A stretch of DNA of 64,000 nucleotides, taken from the NCBI GenBank assembly GCA_964188305.1, contig OZ076889.1; one strand, written 5' to 3'. The position numbers were made by a program, and so were the translations under genes. Below, one piece after another: positions 22,073 to 62,599 of the stretch (position 1 is its first letter; each line of letters starts with the position of its first letter). Source of the DNA: Podarcis bocagei. Lineage: Eukaryota. The notes under the pieces were generated by a model. The model did not search any database. It was not told the DNA's origin and saw only the letters and a list, made by a program, of their open reading frames with translations.

Positions 22073-22270
22073 CTAAAAAGAAAAATCATCCATTTATCAA
22101 TTTGTCAGACACTAAGGACCCAGCTTACTTAAAATGTAGACATTAAAAGTTTCTACCATGGATGGAAATAAAAGCTATTATGAGAGGCAGGATGCAGCAT
22201 AGCCAGACCTGCAACCACATTATTATATACCCCGCTCCCCCTAAATAGGATAAGGAAAGAAAAATCTTAC

Positions 22271-25244
22271 CTTTTCTAACGCGTTTAACAGGAGTTCCTG
22301 TTACAGTTCTTTTGAAATGCTGCATTTTGTCGCTTGTTGCTATCTGCTCAGGCGAGACAACATGACGGGCTTCATAACTTAACCCAGCTCTGTGAAGATG
22401 CCCACGGACATGATTAGACAATCCAACACCTGTTTCAAAAGTTGCTGGACAATATGGACAGTTTTTTTTCTCAAGCGATAAGTCAGTCCAATGGAAAACT
22501 GAGTTATGCTTTGGCAATGTTGTGCCTATGTTTTCTAAATTATGAGGATCTTGAAAATCATGCAGGTAATTGCTACCTTCGCCATCTTCATAATACTCAA
22601 AATAAAATCCGTCATTTTGCTCATATCTAAGAGAGGATTTACCACCAGTTTCTTCTTCCATTTTACCTTTAAATAAAGGGAACAGGTTTACATGCTCCTG
22701 ATTAATATCACTGTAAGAGTCATCCTCCACAGACCGTGTAGTGTAATCACACAGTTCAACATTATCCCATGAACTTTCATCCTCCGTTTCATAGCTGTCT
22801 TTTTTCCCAGCAAGTTTCTGCAAAACAACAACAGTCATTTTATGTAGAAAGTCTGGATAACTGTCCAAATCATCTCCTTTTACAGAGCCTTCACTTTTGG
22901 ATCTTTTAACCAACCTTTTTACAGTTACATGCTTATCTTTATAGACTCCTGGTCTTTTTGCATCATAGTTAAGAGAATCCATAATAAATCTATGAGAATT
23001 ATTTGAAGATAATAAAGGTAAGGACCTGACAGATCTTGCAGCTTCCCTTTTTAAGTGTAAAAGATAAGGGCTGCTAGATTTTTTAATCCTATTGTTTTCA
23101 TGTTTGTATCTATATAAATAATTATTGCTAGCTCTGACGCTAGTCTTTTGCTTTCCTGAATGATGCAAATACTTAGGTTTTTGGCCAGTGCTATTTCTAT
23201 TCAAAATAGGCTTGTCTGTAGAGCTATGACCATACACACTTACAGCTGACTGTGCAACGCTTTTCCGAGCCTTCTGTATCCTGGGGGGTCTCTTGTGAAG
23301 TTTTGCAAAGTTACTGGACTGGAATGCAGAGCCAAATGGTCTTTTTATATCTTGTTTTAAAACAGAGTTCTTTGGAAAGGCAGATGATTGTTTGATGAAA
23401 TGTTTAGTCCTGCTGCCAAAATCTAAAGGGTCTTCTATAATATGACCTTTTCTTTTTTCTAGTCTAAGTCGGCTACCAAAAGGGTCTATGCACGATGTTG
23501 GATGCAGGTATTCCATGTGTTTTTTCAAAATGCTTCTGGCTGATGTAGTGAATGGACACATTTTGCACATATAGTCAGCTGATTTTTTGGACGATTCCAT
23601 GAAGGAATCTTTCGCTAATGCCTTTTTCTGTGATTTTCTCTGAGCTATATCTGCAGTGATCATTGAACATTTCACCACTGCCCCATGAGCAATCCCTCGA
23701 TGACATTCAAGTTCACTCTCTGTCACTGCCATAAAGTTACATTCTTCACAGCAGTAGTACCTTTTGTCCTTCTCATGGGTTTTAGCATGCTGCACAAAGG
23801 TTTTGGGACAATTGGTACCAAATACACATTGTGGACACTGTAACCGTGCACTCCTACCCTCGTCCTGAAGCTCTTTCAATTCACGAATTTCCTCCATCAG
23901 TTTCTGTCTTCTTTCCTGGTGAATTATCATATGTTTAAGAAGGGAATTGCGGTCTCGAAAGGTCCGACCACATTCCCTACATGCATAAGGCCTTGGAACA
24001 TTTAAATGGCGAAAGTGGCTATTGCCATCCAAATGATACATCATGTGCCTGTGCAGGTGCTTCTTTTCCCTAAAATTCACATTGCACTTTGTACAGGGAT
24101 AAAATGAAGGCTCATCAGTACTGAAATTAGTTGGTGGTTCCAATTCATCTTGTTCACATTTGTTTAACAGAGTATTAGAAAGAAAAGTGCTAGTGTGAAT
24201 AGGAGAAGTACCACCTGCACATTTATTACTTGGGTTATAAATCAATTGTTGAATGGCATCTACAACTTCCAATTCCTCATCTGTTGATTCAGGCTTCACT
24301 TTTGCTAAAGAAAATTTATGAGATTCTATCACTTGTAGAGTCTCACTCTGCTCCAAAAACTCAGTATCTAACGATTCTGAATTGTCATGAGTATAATTTG
24401 ATTCATTAAAACAGTCCTCAGTGTAACGTGTGATTTTGCTAACATCCATCTTTCTTTTCCTCCTTTTTGGTACACCCACTTTAGGCTGGACTGGTGACTT
24501 CTCTACAGGTTCTTCATTTGTCATGAGAAATTCTATAAACTCTTTCTGTGGGTCCCAGTTTGCATCACTTTCAGTTCTGAAGTCACCTGTACCTGAGGAT
24601 GTGGCTGTTAGTGATTTGCTACCACCATCTTTTTCTAGCGAACTTTTGCTATCCTCACACATGTCTACTTGGCTTACTAAAGTGCTATCTGGTTTTATGC
24701 TTTTTCGTATAGATGGCTGTGTGTCACAAGCAACTGAAGCAGAGGGAGGTAGATTTTTTATGGAATGTGTCAGGTTCTTAGCATGAGCTGCTTCAGGTAA
24801 CAAAAACAAATGTTGGTGTGGACTTGAATTTTGGGTTGAAGTCTTTGTGGGAAGTTGGTGATCATGTGCCACCGTCCCAGCGGAGCAAGAATCTGCTTGA
24901 TGGCCCACAGTTTGTGCAGTGGTTAATGAAATGCTGCCTTTCTTCATAATGGAAGTGGAGTGTGAAACTGGTCCATTAACAGCAGTTCCTGTAGGCAGAA
25001 GAAAGTTTTCACTTGAAACAGTAGGAGCACTAGAGTGTATAAATAGAGACGTTTGGCCTCCGCTTAAGGCTTTTTCAGACTTGTCCCTTGATAGCTCTTC
25101 AGGCAGAGTTAACGTATTTTTCTGAAATGATGTTTCACTCTCTTGTGATTTGAGAATGCTGCTCTGCTTCTCAGAAATGAAGCTGCTGTCATCTAGCAGT
25201 CCTTTAGCACCAATGATCTGAGTATCGATCTCTGTTTCATCCAT
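22271..25244 (-). CDS. ZNF644: ZNF644 large exon 3, coding part (exon begins at 25280); multiple C2H2 fingers, NLS PKRRKRK
   Basis: [11 protein letters not shown]...[23 protein letters not shown]...[21 protein letters not shown]...VKRVRK matches ZNF644. Acceptor ttttattctag at 25281-2, donor AAAG|gtaaga at 22270-69. ATG is in strong Kozak context (AGTATGG). Confidence 0.97.
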
Positions 25245-30016: not shown

Positions 30017-30172
30017 NNNNNNNNNNNNNNNNNNNNNNNNNNNNNNNNNNNNNNNNNNNNNNNNNNNNNNNNNNNNNNNNNNNNNNNNNNNNNNNNNNNN
30101 NNNNNNNNNNNNNNNNNNNNNNNNNNNNNNNNNNNNNNNNNNNNNNNNNNNNNNNNNNNNNNNNNNNNNNNN
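30017..30172. other. Assembly gap (156 N)
   Basis: Run of N. Confidence 1.
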
Positions 30173-46514: not shown

Positions 46515-46869
46515 CAGTGGTACCTCGCAAGACGAATGCCTCGCAAGACGGAAAACTCGCAAAACGAAAGGGTTTTTGGTTTTTTGAGTTGCTTCGCAAG
46601 ACGATTTTCCCTATGGGCTTGCTTCGCAAGACGGAAACGTCTTGCAAGTTTGTTTCCTTTTTCTTAAAACCGTTAATACAGTTGCGACTTGACTTCGAGG
46701 AGCAACTCATAGCACGCGGTGTGGTAGCCTTTTTTGAGGTTTTTGAAGACTTTTGTGATTTTTGAAGCTTTCCCAAAACTTTTCCGACACCGTGCTTCGC
46801 AAGACGAAAAAAACCGCAAGACGAAAAAACTCGCGGAACGAATTAATTTCGTCTTGCAAGGCACCACTG
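46515..46869. mobile_element. Tc1/mariner-type MITE, same family as 34845-35140, opposite orientation
   Basis: TA-CAGTGGTACCTCGCAAGACG ... CGTCTTGCAAGGCACCACTG-TA; CpGs largely intact, suggesting a young copy. Confidence 0.9.
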
Positions 46870-47849
46870 TACTTTTGCAGCTGCTATAACTATCTTATAT
46901 GCATGGTTTATGGCACAATATGTTACATTTTAAAAACTGAGATTACTAAGACACCTCCATAGTTTGTGTAGGTTTTTGTACTTTACTCTGAGCCTTGTTG
47001 ACCACAGTACTTATTAGTAACTAGACTGTTTTATTGGACAAGGGAAGGTCTCAATAAAGGGATAAAAAAAAAAAATGCAAATGGCTTAATAACTTCCATC
47101 AATTATTTTATTTGGATGGCCCTCCTGGGTACCTTTCACTACAATACCAAATTGGTACGATCAGTTTTCTATCAACAGTTGGTAAAACAAGGGATTAGAG
47201 AAAGTCCTGGATGGCATCAATAACTATTGGCTTTTATAACTAAGGTGAGGGGTATGTTCAAAAGTAGACTACTTCAGCAATTCCAGGTTAAAAGGATTTA
47301 TGGGTCCACTGATGGGTCAGTGCCCAAACAAAGCACAGAGAATATGTAACTAAATGCTATCTAGTAGAGGACATTCTGCTGAATGCATGGGTGTCAGGCC
47401 AAATATTATTTTGGGGCACACACCCCAGTTATTTATTCTTTTCTACACATTTTAAGTACTGCTGGCTTTTAATGTTATTATTTTGTTTTAACACAAACTA
47501 TTGTTGGAACACCTCAGAACTTATAGCTTGACGTAAGTTTTATGGAAGCAGGTGTCATGGTTAATGAGCTGCAGAAGGATTTGCACTTGCCATCCAAATG
47601 CAAATTGCCATCTTGCTGTGAGTCCTGGAATACCTGCTCCTTGCCCGGGGGTGGGGGCAGCTACAAAATGTTGAAGTGGCTGAACAGGGGGTTTTGTTGC
47701 AGGGTTTTATTGCTATTTTTATTGCCCTCTTTAAAATGTTTTAAATTGTTTTTAACTGCTTTTAACTTGTAAGTTGTTACATTTGAGGGTTTGCTGTTTT
47801 TTAAAGTAAGGGAACATAAGATCTGCATGGAAGGAGAGGAGCTAGAAAG

Positions 47850-50799: not shown

Positions 50800-52204
50800 T
50801 ATATTATTCTCTCATCTTACTGTGCCTATTAAGGCAACACTATTTCCCGTTGGCTATGACTTAAAGGGATCTATCAGAGTATGATTTAGGTAACTTAGCC
50901 ATAGACATTGGCCATGTTTGGCGGCAATGCTAAATCATGGTTTTATGTAGCAGCTGGTTAGACTTAAAATGTTATATATTTTACATACATTTTCCTCAAG
51001 ACTAAACATAAAACGTATGTAATTCTTTTGGCCCCAGTTTCCGTCCACCATCAGAATGCTACCCACAGAAGACTGGCCAGGTTTGAATCCAGTCCTCCAT
51101 CTGAAAGTTATCTTTACCTGCCCCCAGTTTTGTTCTACATAAATTAACCTACCATCAATGTCAATTTACCATCTCCCTCCTCTCCTCTCCTCCCCTCCAT
51201 GGTCTAGAAGCAGAATTCAAAACTTTTACCACTTCTCCTTAAGTGTGGCTTCTTCATTGGCAAAACCAAGGACCATGGTTTAACGCTAACTGGTTCTAGA
51301 AAAAGCTAACTTCAAACCACGGAGTAGAGATCACACAAGTCTGGAAGGTTTATTCATGTAGCACTAAACCAAGGCTTAGCATTATATTCAAAGATGGCTA
51401 CTGTCTATCGTAATAGTTACCTAAACCATGCTGTAATTGACTCTTCCAAAACAAACCATATGTAGTGTTAAATCACTACCCCCAATTTGGACAACATGGG
51501 AAGATTCTTATACTGCAAGGCAAAAGCTTACAAACTCTTGGCTAAGTGGGATGAGAATGCCAGAGCCCAGGAAACAGCTAATTTCTTCACAAAATATGAA
51601 ACTATGGTTTAGTGTTATGCCAAATGTGGCCACTGTTGATCTGCACAAAGTCAGCTTACCTAAGCAGATGCATCTATATGTTTGTGCTTAAAACTCTTAA
51701 GTGGCACATTTTCTTGGCATCTCCCTTCTTAAAACATGCTTCTTTTGCATCAATAATGAAAAACTTAATTTGCAAACAGAGATATCCAGTTTCTTCCATA
51801 GTTGAATTTAAAATAGAATGGATTTTTAAAGAGGTAGGGAGTTTGAATTGGAAAATTCATAATTCTAACATGTTCATCATGTGACTTATAAAATTAGCAT
51901 GAGGTAATTCTTAAGTTTTTGAATCAACATATTTTATCAGGCACATTATTATACTTAAAAGTGGTTTAGATGTTAAAGAAACTCAAAACCTTACAAGGAA
52001 ATAATAACTTGAAAAAATTTATAAAGATGATAGTTTGCACTTCCCTTACATTGTATAAGAGGGGGAGGGATGAAGGCAGGGAAAACTACTAACACAACAA
52101 TTTTAGCACACCAAAATAATTGTGCATGATGTATCATGGTTGTCCACAATTCTACTTCAGAGTTATAATCCAACTTGGACACCTCCAGTTTCACAGTCGC
52201 TACC

Positions 52205-57208: not shown

Positions 57209-58298
57209 GCATAAAGTACCACAAGTAACCACTACAACTGGTCATAGTACCTACAGTATATGCAACGACTAATTAACACTGTAGCTACTTCTGAATACAC
57301 AGCCATGGCTTGAAATTTTCAAGAATCAAGACAATCACTACAAATACTATCAGAAACACTGCCTAACTCTAGAGCTATTCAGTGAATGGATATTTACACA
57401 GAACAGGACAGAAAGTGGTACAACAGAAAATCATTCTCCTCCTTTCCACAGCCCAGTCATCGGCAAATTGTGTGATTTCTGAAAATACATTTGCCATCTA
57501 TTAGCAGCAGCTGGGAGACAGAAAAAAAAACACATAAAAAGCTCCATTCCAGCCTCCAGGCAGGGGGTAACTTGACACTTTGACATCACAACAGCAGATA
57601 AAATGATGGAAAGTTTGGAGATTAGCTATTCAGCCTTTATATTTTGGCCTAAGAGTATAAAGCTTTATATTTCATTGCAACTTAAAGCAGTTTGTTATTA
57701 ACAGTGGGATGTTCCTGGACAATGTATTTAGTACTTTAGTACTTTTTATAACAGCCAAAGCTTTTAAAACAATGTTATAAACATTAAGCTCTGATGAGCG
57801 TGCAGCAAAACCAACATGGCACATGCATGCATTCAAGTCTCTGGCAGAGAACCAAAGTCTTTGCACACAGGAAAAACACTTCCATACACATGATGCAGCT
57901 TGCCTGTTTTCCTGTGATAGAGGCCCCTCACAGGGCCCTCCTTCAGAGGGTCTCAAAAGCTCTTTTCAGGAGGTGCAAGAGGCTACTGTTGAAGGGGGGA
58001 CCAATGAGCCCCCAAAGATAAGAGGAGACTGTGAATGGCACTTTTGATCCAAGCCTCTCTCCATGGTTGCCCTGCTTTGATGACATAGATGCTTCCGTTA
58101 TTCTGGCTGCCACTGCCTTACCACAGCTGTGACAGTCATTTGTCAATGGCGAAAAAGAATTGTCCCCAGGCAATCAACTACTGTGTCTGAACCTTGAAGA
58201 ACTCCTTGCTTGCATGCCAGAAGACTATATCCCAGGCTCTCTCCCTTTCTGCGATGAGGAAAAAGTCCTGAGCCCTACCTACAAAACACACCCCTTTA

Positions 58299-58894
58299 CT
58301 GTAGCCTGTTCTTCATCACTGGGAATACCTCCGGCGCCCATGGAGCGGGCGGCCCCCGTCAGGCGCAGCGGCCCCCGGCCCAGGGGACTCCGGCCAGCGC
58401 TGAGGCCTCACAGGGCCCCGCACACCCGCAGTAACCTTGACTCCATGGCAACCCTCAGAGGAGAGCGAGAGAGAGGCGGAGAGGCTACAGGAATGGAGGC
58501 TACAGGAATGGAGAGGAAAACCATGAAAGCTTTAGAGAAGGGGCTGGATCCTTACAACATGCTACCACCCAAACGATATGCTGAAACAAAGGAAGACCCC
58601 AACATAGTCCCTTCAATTACAGACAAGAGGCTTGTGGTCTGCATCTGTGAAGAGGACAACAGCACTGTGATCTGGTTCTGGCTGCACAAGGGAAATCCCC
58701 AGCGCTGCCCCTCCTGTGGAGCCCATTACAAGTTGGTTGGCTACCAATTGCCCTGATTTGGCTTCAAAGCTTTGCTGAGCTCTCAATTTATGATTTCTGG
58801 ATACAGGGCTGAGCTACATAGCTGTTTATATCACGATGTATCACATTCCTTGAAACCTAATAAAGTCTTTGACTCATAAAAAAAACCAAAAAAA
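58299..58894 (+). pseudogene. COX5B: Processed (retro)pseudogene of cytochrome c oxidase subunit 5B with inverted 5' part
   Basis: Intronless ATGMERK...[11 protein letters not shown]...[48 protein letters not shown] on +. AATAAA at 58859-64, poly(A) at 58878-94, TSD core CACCCCTTTA (58289-98, 58899-908). The N-terminus [12 protein letters not shown]...[16 protein letters not shown] lies on the minus strand (58446 down to 58299). Confidence 0.95.
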
Positions 58895-60169
58895 CCCCCA
58901 CCCCTTTATTACAGGTGTATAGTGATTCTTTCTTCCTACCAGTCCTAAAACTAGAAGTCTAAGCCTGAAAGTGAAAGGCTAAGAAAGTAAAAGCCTAAGT
59001 TTCATACACAGAGGAACTCTTTCAGGTAGAAAAGAAAGTGGCAACACAGAGGCTAGGAGCTGCCTCAGCATGGAGTTTCTGGCTGGCATCTCTTGTCCCC
59101 TCCCTCTTCCTGATAAATACATAAGGAGACAAGATGCCCAGCAATGCATTCTACAACCATTTCCACTTCTCTATGCCTTCTAGTCTTAATCTGGAAAGCA
59201 CAGAGACTGCCAAGTTTGTAAAGTATTGGCTAAATTTCACTAAGCAAGACTTAAGTCCACCAACGCAATACAAAGTTATCCGAAAGTATATGCCATGTCT
59301 TACTATTTTTCTCAGATCCTTCACTGAAATAAAAGAATCAGTGTTATATTTGTCATTTGAAGTAATACTTTAGCTTGAATTCTAAATGTTCAAGTAAGCA
59401 CCTATCAGCACTATAGTGACTGTTACATCCAAGAGTGTTTATTTTTCTCTTAGAAATGCTAATTGACTTTTTTTTAAAGGCATGCAAATTTGAAAACATG
59501 ATCTTCTGATGCTGCTCTTTTTTTAAAGAAAAATCACGACTTTAACCAAATCCTGATTTAATGATATGGAAAAATTGGTTCAGTCCCATAAATGTAATGA
59601 ATGTTCCAATGCTTCTGAACACTAGGGATAAATAATTTATGAGGAAACGAGGAATATAACAAACACTAACAAAAACATTGACTCCTAAACTGCTTTTTAA
59701 GTTTACCTTCTAGAGGCAATATGAATACTGTTAGTAATAAGCCCATTTGGCCATTGCGCTCACTAGTTCTGTGGTTTGGTTTTTGCTAATCCCAACACAT
59801 GCTAAAGTTATTGGCCCCATTCACATTTAACACTAAGCAAAATCATGGTATAGCAAGAAAGCAAATGTGGGTTCCCGGATCACAGTCAGTGCACTCCTCC
59901 CTCACTGATGTGAGCTAAGTCATGGTTTAGCTCAGCATTACATCTAAATTCAGGCCTATGGCTTATCTCACTCAAGACAAACCATGAAGTTTGTTTTTTG
60001 TGTATCATTTGTGGTTTTTCTGAAGGAGCAAAACTACAAGCCCAGGTGCAGGCACAACACTAAGGCAAATCATGACTTTGTCGCAGATAGCAAGGTGGTA
60101 GCAAACCTCGCCAGTGATGACTTTTCCTGAAATAGCAGGTTTCAAATATTTTTGTCACTTTCGTGGAAT

Positions 60170-60515: not shown

Positions 60516-61157
60516 AGCAAAGCAGGCTCTGTTCACATTCAAAACGAATAATGAATTAGTAAGTAAAAGTGTAATTGAGATGTATGTTTTCCCAATCACA
60601 TCTCCATGTATCTAAGCGGGAACTCAAATCCAGACCTTCCTAGTCTATCTACCCTACTTCTGGACAACTCTTCTTACTTTTAATAAAGCCTTTCTGACAC
60701 ATTAATGCTGAACAATGCTATCTCTTTTACCTACCCAGACCAATTAAAAAATAAAAGCATCATCAAGTATGAAAAAGTAGTTTTCCTTGCAGCACCAGTA
60801 TTTTGAAATATACTCATATGTCAAGAGTATTGGTACATCCAGGGTCGTAAGAACTTCAGTATCTTGTGGACAATTTGATGTGATAAACTACACTAAGTAC
60901 ACAGTTTAGCAGCCATCTTAAGGAAACCATGACAATATTCCCAAGTCATTGGTTTAAGGTGTGCTACTTATACATTAATCTGAAACTGTGTCCTGTATTT
61001 CTAAATAAGGTTCCACAAATGGGCCCAATATCACATCACTTTTGAGCCTTAATTTTGCATACTGCTTTAAAATATTACTTTATTTCCAGTTATTATTAAA
61101 TTAATCCCCAAAACATGAATAAGAGAAAGATTCTCCTCTACTTTCAATTTACAAATA

Positions 61158-61383
61158 CAGTGGTACCTCGGGTTAAGAACTTAATTCGGTCCGGAGGTCC
61201 ATTCTTAACCTGAAACTGTTCTTAACCTGAAGCAGCACTTTAGCTAATGGGGCCTCCTGCTGCCACCGCACCGCCGGACCACGATTTCTGTTCTCATCCT
61301 GAAGCAAAGTTCTTAACCCAAGGTACTATTTCTGGGTTAGCAGAGTCTGTAACCTGAAGCGTATGTAACATGAGGCACCACTG
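61158..61383. mobile_element. Tc1/mariner-type MITE
   Basis: TA-CAGTGGTACCTCGGGTTA ... TAACATGAGGCACCACTG-TA; repeated TTCTTAACC motifs. Confidence 0.9.
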
Positions 61384-62599
61384 TAACTGAAAAGCTACAT
61401 ATTAAAACTGTTTTTCCTTTCTTGAATTAACTTTTGAAAGACTGGCAAATTTCATGAGTCAGTCCTGATAATGTGGATGTGATTCAGGTTCATGTTTTCA
61501 GCCCCTTTTTTAACTTTTCCCCTTCTTATCACATACCTTATATTACTTAGGGTAAAGTAACATGCAAAGAAAACAGTAACTTGCCCAATAGTGTGTCCAA
61601 GCCCATGAAGTGACCTGAATATGAACCAGAGCTCCTATGTTAAAAACTCTACTGATCCACTAGTACCATCTCTACTGTTGCAAAAGGATTGTCATATTGA
61701 CCTTTTCTTTGCACTCTGCATTGTTTTGGTGAATTGACAGCTTTTTAAATTTACATTTTAGCTTATGTTGTTTTGTCAAGTATTTTCAAGTCCTCCTTGC
61801 CGTACAACTTTCACACCAGGAAGTACGTAGAATCAGTGATCAAAAGTCCCATTGTTCTGGGCACATTTTGCGACAGGGAATTTCTTTAGTGCAAGCAGCT
61901 TCTGAGCTCCAGAAACAGTACTGCACCTAAGATTTCCAATTAAAACCGCAGTGTGGAAGGAAAGGACCTTTTTCTGCCTCCTAACTACCAGCTACTCTCC
62001 AGGGTAGACCCTCTTAAGAATACTAGGGGGGTGGACAGGGAAAGGACTAGACCATGTGAAAAATGAATGTAAGATTTAGCCGCCGTTCATTCATTTTCAG
62101 CTTCGTATTATAAAAGAGTGCGCCCAGACATTCCGTTGCTGCGCCTGCAACCTCGGTTTAAGGTGCTTTTTAGCTCCTGGCTTTCATATCTCCGTTTCTA
62201 ATTCTGCGTAGAATCGTAGTCTCCTGAAGCCTTACCTACGCTAAAGCAGCAAAATTCTTCCGCCCAAATTCTTTCACATCTTGAAATTCATCAACCTGGG
62301 GACAAGGAATTCCAAACGTTAGTTCTCCCATCAAAACACAACGCAGGTGATTTACACCCTCACACATTCTGGTAGCCTAACAGTTACATCGCAAGTGCCT
62401 GGTTAAGATTTGCCGGGGGAGGCATTTTCTCGCCCTGCAATGTGAGCGCCAGACCAAGAGAAGAGCAACAAGTGTGTGTACAAGAGCTTGGAAACATTTC
62501 GGGACACCATCCATCCCTAGGCAACTGCATAGTGCAGGGACTCCGCTGCCGATTAGTACCAACGGTTACTATTGTCCCTGGTGCGTTTTTACACGTTCC

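Follow-up and report, generated by a model that had tools for sequence, protein, structure and literature searches.

Within a stretch of 64,000 nucleotides of Podarcis bocagei DNA (hereafter the window), a COX5B-like sequence lies in two adjoining parts of opposite orientation, which raises the question of how a single gene copy came to be turned against itself. An initial annotation of the locus had proposed a retrocopy inserted by L1-type twin priming in a reptile; the host is indeed a lizard of the genus Podarcis (Lacertidae). We thus looked at the anatomy of the copy, its parental gene, the state of the site in relatives and the junctions between its parts.

Structure of the COX5B insertion

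The insertion is 600 nt long (58299-58898) and is enclosed by a target-site duplication pair, the exact 10-mer CACCCCTTTA, present as direct repeats at 58289-58298 on the 5' side and at 58899-58908 on the 3' side with a spacing of 610. As had been annotated, both parts of the copy therefore lie between the two duplication copies.

The inverted cDNA segment, delimited by blastn against the parental genes, by translation and by alignment of the 5'UTR, starts directly after the 5' duplication copy and ends at about 58485 (58299-58485). Read on the minus strand, it is composed of about 40 nt of partial 5'UTR (58447-58485), the ATG (58446-58444), an exon 1/exon 2 junction between 58329 and 58328, and the first 30 nt of exon 2, whose final bases, GGCTACAG, end at 58299. 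The minus strand of 58299-58446 encodes COX5B from the presequence onward with a single in-frame stop, at codon 13 (R13 to TGA, 58410-58408). The inversion of the 5'UTR and presequence is thus as described initially, to which this stop has to be added, but the 5'UTR is not complete: about 22-25 nt are absent when it is compared with the full-length retrocopies L001, L006 and L007 (see below). Either the second cDNA halted early or it was trimmed when the two parts were joined.

On the plus strand, COX5B homology extends from 58482 to the poly(A) site at 58877 if an extra tandem copy at its start (see below) is included, in agreement with the sense 3' part annotated previously; its translation matches the Pfam COX5B family with an E value of 4.6e-21, and the COX5B proteins of Podarcis lilfordi and Lacerta agilis at 97% and 95%, respectively. 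The sense cDNA segment itself (58497-58877, from Pfam and blastn) contains the remaining part of exon 2 and exons 3 and 4, with exon junctions near 58546/7 and 58647/8, the COX5B stop codon (58754-58756), the 3'UTR downstream of it and an AATAAA signal (58859-58864). Just 3' of this polyadenylation signal a poly(A) tail begins, at the point where homology to the parental genomic sequence stops (58877). The tail (58878-58898) is present as announced but, read directly, it is interrupted, with the composition A8 CC A7 C4. The two internal C's are at 58886-58887, and the C4 (58895-58898) separates the tail from the 3' duplication copy; the C's are also found in a contig of an independent sample of the same species. 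They may have been added without a template, belong to a mixed tail or result from slippage of the primer. We found neither an A-tail nor a duplication belonging to the inverted part alone.

The insertion site is empty in relatives

The host locus is a 5' intron of ZNF644, the large minus-strand open reading frame at 22143-25244 being ZNF644 itself. The ZNF644 locus of P. muralis (L010) aligns over its full length to the window with a mismatch of 2.9%, which makes the window a Podarcis species other than P. muralis. The loci of P. raffonei and Zootoca, reached through ZNF644 proteins, span only the coding range (5.9-27 kb of the window). Three other features of the window were noted: MITE-like elements with CAGTGGTACCTCG-type termini at 46520-46870 and 61150-61390, a segment without counterpart in L010 (60777-61357), and a run of 156 N (30017-30172) that is an assembly gap or masked sequence.

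The initial annotation had called for a search for the empty site in relatives. In P. muralis the matching segments end at 58298 and resume at 58899, and they overlap by a single 10-mer at L010:6212-6221. We also placed the Logan contigs of four sequencing runs (X3, X4, X7 and X14) on window positions 57700-59500. Each of X4, X7 and X14 contained a contig in which precisely 610 nt are skipped and 10 letters can be placed on either side. The site is thus exactly empty, with one copy of the 10-mer, in four other taxa (P. muralis and those of X4, X7 and X14). The presence of one 10-mer copy in these relatives means that the whole composite is one insertion. The flanks diverge from the window by 0.5% in X4 and by 1.3% in X7 and X14.

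The fourth run, X3, is an independent sample of the same species as the window. One of its contigs (58412-58526) crosses the inversion junction and both tandem copies with 0 differences, so that the junction, for which a lack of read support had been named initially as a possible refutation, is found in a second individual. At the insert boundaries, the left-flank contig of X3 enters the insert by 30 nt and the right-flank contig enters the tail by 9 nt, both below the 31-nt threshold set for bridging; no contig skipping the 610 nt was found in X3. The inverted insertion is therefore present in both sampled individuals of the species and absent from four relatives. A colinear, non-inverted COX5B copy at this site was not found, all the relatives examined being empty. 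Outside the insertion, all four runs, including the conspecific one, differ from the window at two places: 8 nt are missing at 57727 and 13 nt are extra after 58185. Either the assembled individual has private alleles here or the assembly contains minor errors.

Both parts derive from a spliced COX5B mRNA

The alignment to the parental gene that the initial annotation had suggested was carried out part by part, by reference. In three assemblies (L003, L004 and L005) the gene for the parental Podarcis protein, P0121, has four exons, and so does the Lacerta agilis COX5B gene (L002), its product P0002 being a close relative of P0121. The insert corresponds to exons 1-4 of L002-L005, with the introns gone and abutting blastn matches; for the sense segment the identity per exon is 97-100%. 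Against the same genes the inverted part gave two minus-strand matches, one to exon 1 and one to the beginning of exon 2, intron 1 being absent. Since it spans the exon 1/exon 2 splice junction, the inverted part is also derived from mRNA. The break between the inverted and sense parts falls within exon 2. Intron sequence was met solely as loose ends of parental contigs, at 58546/58547, and after 58877 the parental genomic sequence departs from the insert with the loose end TGTGTGAATG (contigs of X3 and X4). As both parts match exons from which the introns have been removed, both come from spliced mRNA, and from one and the same: the inverted part represents the 5' portion, with its 3'-most base abutting the 5' duplication copy. 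With the exact empty site and the match to four exons, this structure goes beyond a chance arrangement.

Three colinear full-length COX5B retrocopies were found elsewhere in the genus, L001:2919-3557 and L007:2922-3556 in P. lilfordi and L006:2921-3530 in P. muralis. They are independent of one another, have A-tails and carry duplications of 16-18 bp, one of them at a TTT/AAAA site. The 132-codon frame is intact in each, two of the three encode a protein identical to that of the parent, and they are annotated as COX5B or COX5B-like genes. These copies resemble the window copy in the parental mRNA used, the same AATAAA, similar poly(A) sites, the presence of A-tails and duplications, and a young age with an intact or almost intact sequence. 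In contrast, they are full-length and colinear with 16-18 bp duplications, whereas the window copy is 5'-inverted and disrupted with a 10-bp duplication. None of the three has the substitutions private to the insert, and they were rejected as sources of its mRNA. Two further partial COX5B copies are annotated in P. muralis and P. raffonei (P0085 and P0122). COX5B mRNA thus seems to be a frequent template for retroposition in Podarcis.

The inversion junction and the 15-nt tandem duplication

The breakpoint sequence said to occur in both parts is the 9-mer AGGCTACAG, found once in the inverted part (58299-58307) and twice in direct orientation (58482-58490 and 58497-58505). The two breakpoints are 9 nt apart in mRNA coordinates, the parts overlapping by 9 nt of mRNA. 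A colinear contig of X14 joins 58308 (minus strand) straight to 58497 (plus strand) with 9 shared letters; as this contig represents the colinear source, it shows both the 9-nt overlap and the fact that 58482-58496 is extra.

This extra segment (plus strand) is the first copy of the tandem duplication annotated at the junction. Tandem Repeats Finder gave a period of 15, 2.2 copies and a 100% match at 58481-58513, and a repeat search linked 58293-58307, as an inverted match, to each tandem copy. The duplication of 15 nt (5 residues) has no counterpart in parental exon 2 or in the proteins P0121 and P0002, where the unit is single-copy in each case. The duplicated 15-mer is composed of the 9-nt overlap plus the 6 nt that face the second primer, which is a hint that it originated during insertion; later slippage is equally possible.

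At the inversion junction (58482-58485), 2 nt (AG) or 4 nt (AGGC) can be assigned to either part, depending on the alignment chosen for the CT-rich UTR. The ungapped reading of the UTR is taken from the loose ends at 58483 in X7 and X14, the gapped one from the L003 match, which extends up to 58488. At the 5' junction, the duplication copy ends with CCTTTA and the insert starts with the complement of GGCTACAG. The strict microhomology there is 0 nt. Imperfect complementarity amounts to 4 of 6 positions (CCTTTA compared with CCATTC) or 5 of 8, the next bases of the mRNA being GAATGG.

The enzyme and its target site

The nick on the poly(A) side leaves a primer end ...GGGGTG-3' with TGTTTT beyond it, a mismatch to the mammalian TTTT/AA consensus, and the opposite nick, ...CCTTTA/TT, is T-rich. 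The TTTT/AA endonuclease consensus is typical but not obligatory, being found at 63-70% in humans (PMC12016303). We also considered a 16-bp duplication starting from AAAA, which would place an L1-like AC/AAAA site at the insertion, and discarded it: the 3' copy would need 3 changes in 4 positions.

A young L1 was identified in the same ZNF644 intron of P. muralis. This 5'-truncated element of 2 kb (L010:13753-15817) contains a 578-codon ORF2 fragment (E=2.4e-55 to human ORF2p, 8sxt; Pfam RVT_1), an AATAAA, an A13 tail and a 16-bp target-site duplication, and the window has the corresponding empty site at about 51173-51187. This insertion, young in P. muralis and absent from the window, shows that L1 was recently active in the genus. 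Because of the poly(A) tail, the duplication length and this young L1, we infer that an ORF2p of the L1 clade carried out the insertion in trans.

Coding state and age of the insertion

The window copy is a pseudogene, with a split coding sequence that is inverted in its 5' part, a stop in the presequence and, in the sense coding part, two private changes that are both non-synonymous. When the insert was compared with seven parental or sister sequences, 7-8 private substitutions were counted in 566 nt (58396, 58410, 58442, 58479, 58584, 58638, 58785 and 58818). Every one affects a G:C pair, 7 of the 8 being changes to A:T and two being CpG transitions; the presequence stop is among them, as are the two non-synonymous changes, one of which lies beside a zinc-binding cysteine. 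Their density, 1.2-1.4%, is about 4 times the density in the flanking sequence of this lineage. For the flanks, the window and X4 were compared over 1191 nt and about 4 differences were put on the window's side, an assignment made without outgroup polarisation. The excess is weak (Fisher p=0.02, and p=0.09 without the two CpG transitions), and GC/CpG decay, insertion errors or an older polymorphic insertion may be its cause.

Mechanical translation of the plus strand gives a 198-codon open frame (58160-58756), which has 139 codons if counted from the ATG at 58340. Where it runs antisense to the presequence it specifies an Arg/Pro-rich peptide, and it then enters the COX5B domain in frame. RNA evidence for this frame was looked for and none was found. 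This result, the non-synonymous private changes, the youth of the copy and the scarcity of stops in GC-rich antisense sequence led us to reject it as a gene; it is most likely a by-product of youth and GC content. For the insertion as a whole, the best reading is that it is very recent and confined to the window's lineage.

Probable twin priming and its alternatives

We consider it very probable that a spliced, polyadenylated COX5B mRNA was inserted by L1-type twin priming in one Podarcis lineage, as proposed in the initial annotation; the duplication pair, the exact empty site, the 9-nt spacing of the breakpoints and the junction microhomology all support this reading. The event would have been a target-primed reverse transcription of the mRNA into the ZNF644 intron, in the germline, with two staggered nicks 10 bp apart supplying two primers. 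The bottom-strand end would prime on the poly(A) tail, and the sense cDNA would extend as far as the A of AGGCTACAG in exon 2. A second cDNA would be primed in the same mRNA, just 3' of this 9-mer, by the top-strand end (...CCCTTTA-3') and would extend through exon 1 into the 5'UTR. Joining of the cDNA ends at the 2-4 nt of microhomology would then yield the order duplication copy, inverted 5' part, sense 3' part, A-tail and duplication copy. The order of the nicks in this scheme is inferred. Points against this scheme are the extra direct duplication of 15 nt, which is foreign to the classical twin-priming model, the C4 between tail and duplication, the strict microhomology of 0 nt at the 5' junction and the poly(A)-side nick that departs from TTTT/AA.

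The same gross order would also be the end product if a colinear, near full-length retrocopy had been inserted and its 5' 185 nt had been inverted later by a DNA rearrangement, and small inversions with duplicated breakpoints do occur. This sequence of events is nevertheless highly improbable and is favoured by no result of our analysis. It needs a breakpoint at the very boundary of the duplication copy and the insert; a 9-nt segment in both orientations together with a junction microhomology is the expectation of twin priming and not of a simple inversion; and no intermediate allele was seen, the relatives being empty and both conspecific individuals inverted. Moreover, flanks only 0.5% diverged from a taxon with the empty site make the insertion very young, which leaves little time for a second event. 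Two independent retrocopies inserted side by side might be imagined in a genus where COX5B retrocopies are frequent (at least five other loci), as might an assembly chimera. Here one 10-bp duplication pair holds both parts, the inverted part is without an A-tail, and the parts are complementary portions of one mRNA that meet within 9 nt; the exact empty site and the X3 contig spanning the junction with 0 differences refute this explanation, whose probability we consider close to nil.

If twin priming is retained, the reverse transcriptase might still have been provided by another element, for example another squamate LINE clade. The nick on the poly(A) side, which is not at an L1 consensus site, is in line with this, squamates carry active CR1, L2, RTE and R4 elements besides L1 (PMC5389967), and L2 in Anolis also forms chimeras by template switching (PMC4476161). 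However, plain poly(A) priming and a 10-bp duplication are properties of the L1 type; L2 duplications are short and insertions start at the element's own 3' repeat (PMC4476161, PMC4245944). The young poly(A)-tailed L1 with its 16-bp duplication in the same P. muralis intron, and the sister COX5B retrocopies with 16-18 bp duplications, one at TTT/AAAA, also speak for L1. We thus regard a non-L1 enzyme as unlikely, and L1-type twin priming as the reading to keep.

Relation to known twin-primed insertions

5'-inverted L1 and mRNA retrocopies, with microhomologies and duplications of 10-17 bp, have been described in humans and apes (PMC2912911), and 13% of polymorphic human processed pseudogenes are twin-primed (PMC12016303). 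The window copy is like these insertions in having one duplication pair in the 10-17 bp range, a 3' sense segment with poly(A), an oppositely oriented 5' segment from the same RNA, breakpoints that overlap slightly and microhomology at the inversion junction. It differs by its lacertid host, by a nick that is not TTTT/AA, by the extra direct 15-nt duplication, by the C-interrupted tail and by the absence of strict microhomology at the 5' junction, a place at which 1 nt or more is shared in about 95% of human 5'-inverted L1s (PMC2912911). It also resembles the inverted chimeras of U5 snRNA and L1, in which a top-strand nick primes internally on a cellular RNA with partial complementarity (PMC4476161); these, however, combine two RNAs, L1 and snRNA, whereas both cDNAs of the window copy come from one mRNA. 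In the literature that we searched (Anolis, lizards, Podarcis and zebrafish) we found no description of twin priming in reptiles, though one may exist.

The window copy is thus a well-documented reptile example of a known process and not a new process, and it leaves the current understanding of retrotransposition unchanged. A bolder proposal, which we hold to be doubtful, is that it represents the first sequence-resolved case, with its empty site, of reptilian L1 twin priming on a cellular mRNA, and that the 15-nt duplication and the G:C substitutions could be footprints of two colliding reverse transcriptases. If the former were true, the two-primer pathway would be an ancestral property of amniote L1 ORF2p; if the latter were, stalling, slippage and low-fidelity synthesis would take place at insertion.

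The locus provides a clean non-mammalian 5'-inverted processed pseudogene with both junctions, the pre-integration site and a second individual. The insertion can be used as a presence/absence marker within Podarcis, and it offers a basis from which 5' inversions among the L1s and retrocopies of reptiles could be counted genome-wide. For the wall lizards themselves, it indicates that their L1-type machinery mobilises cellular mRNAs now or did so very recently, the flanks being about 0.5% from those of a taxon with the empty site, and that it does so by the two-primer route of mammalian L1.
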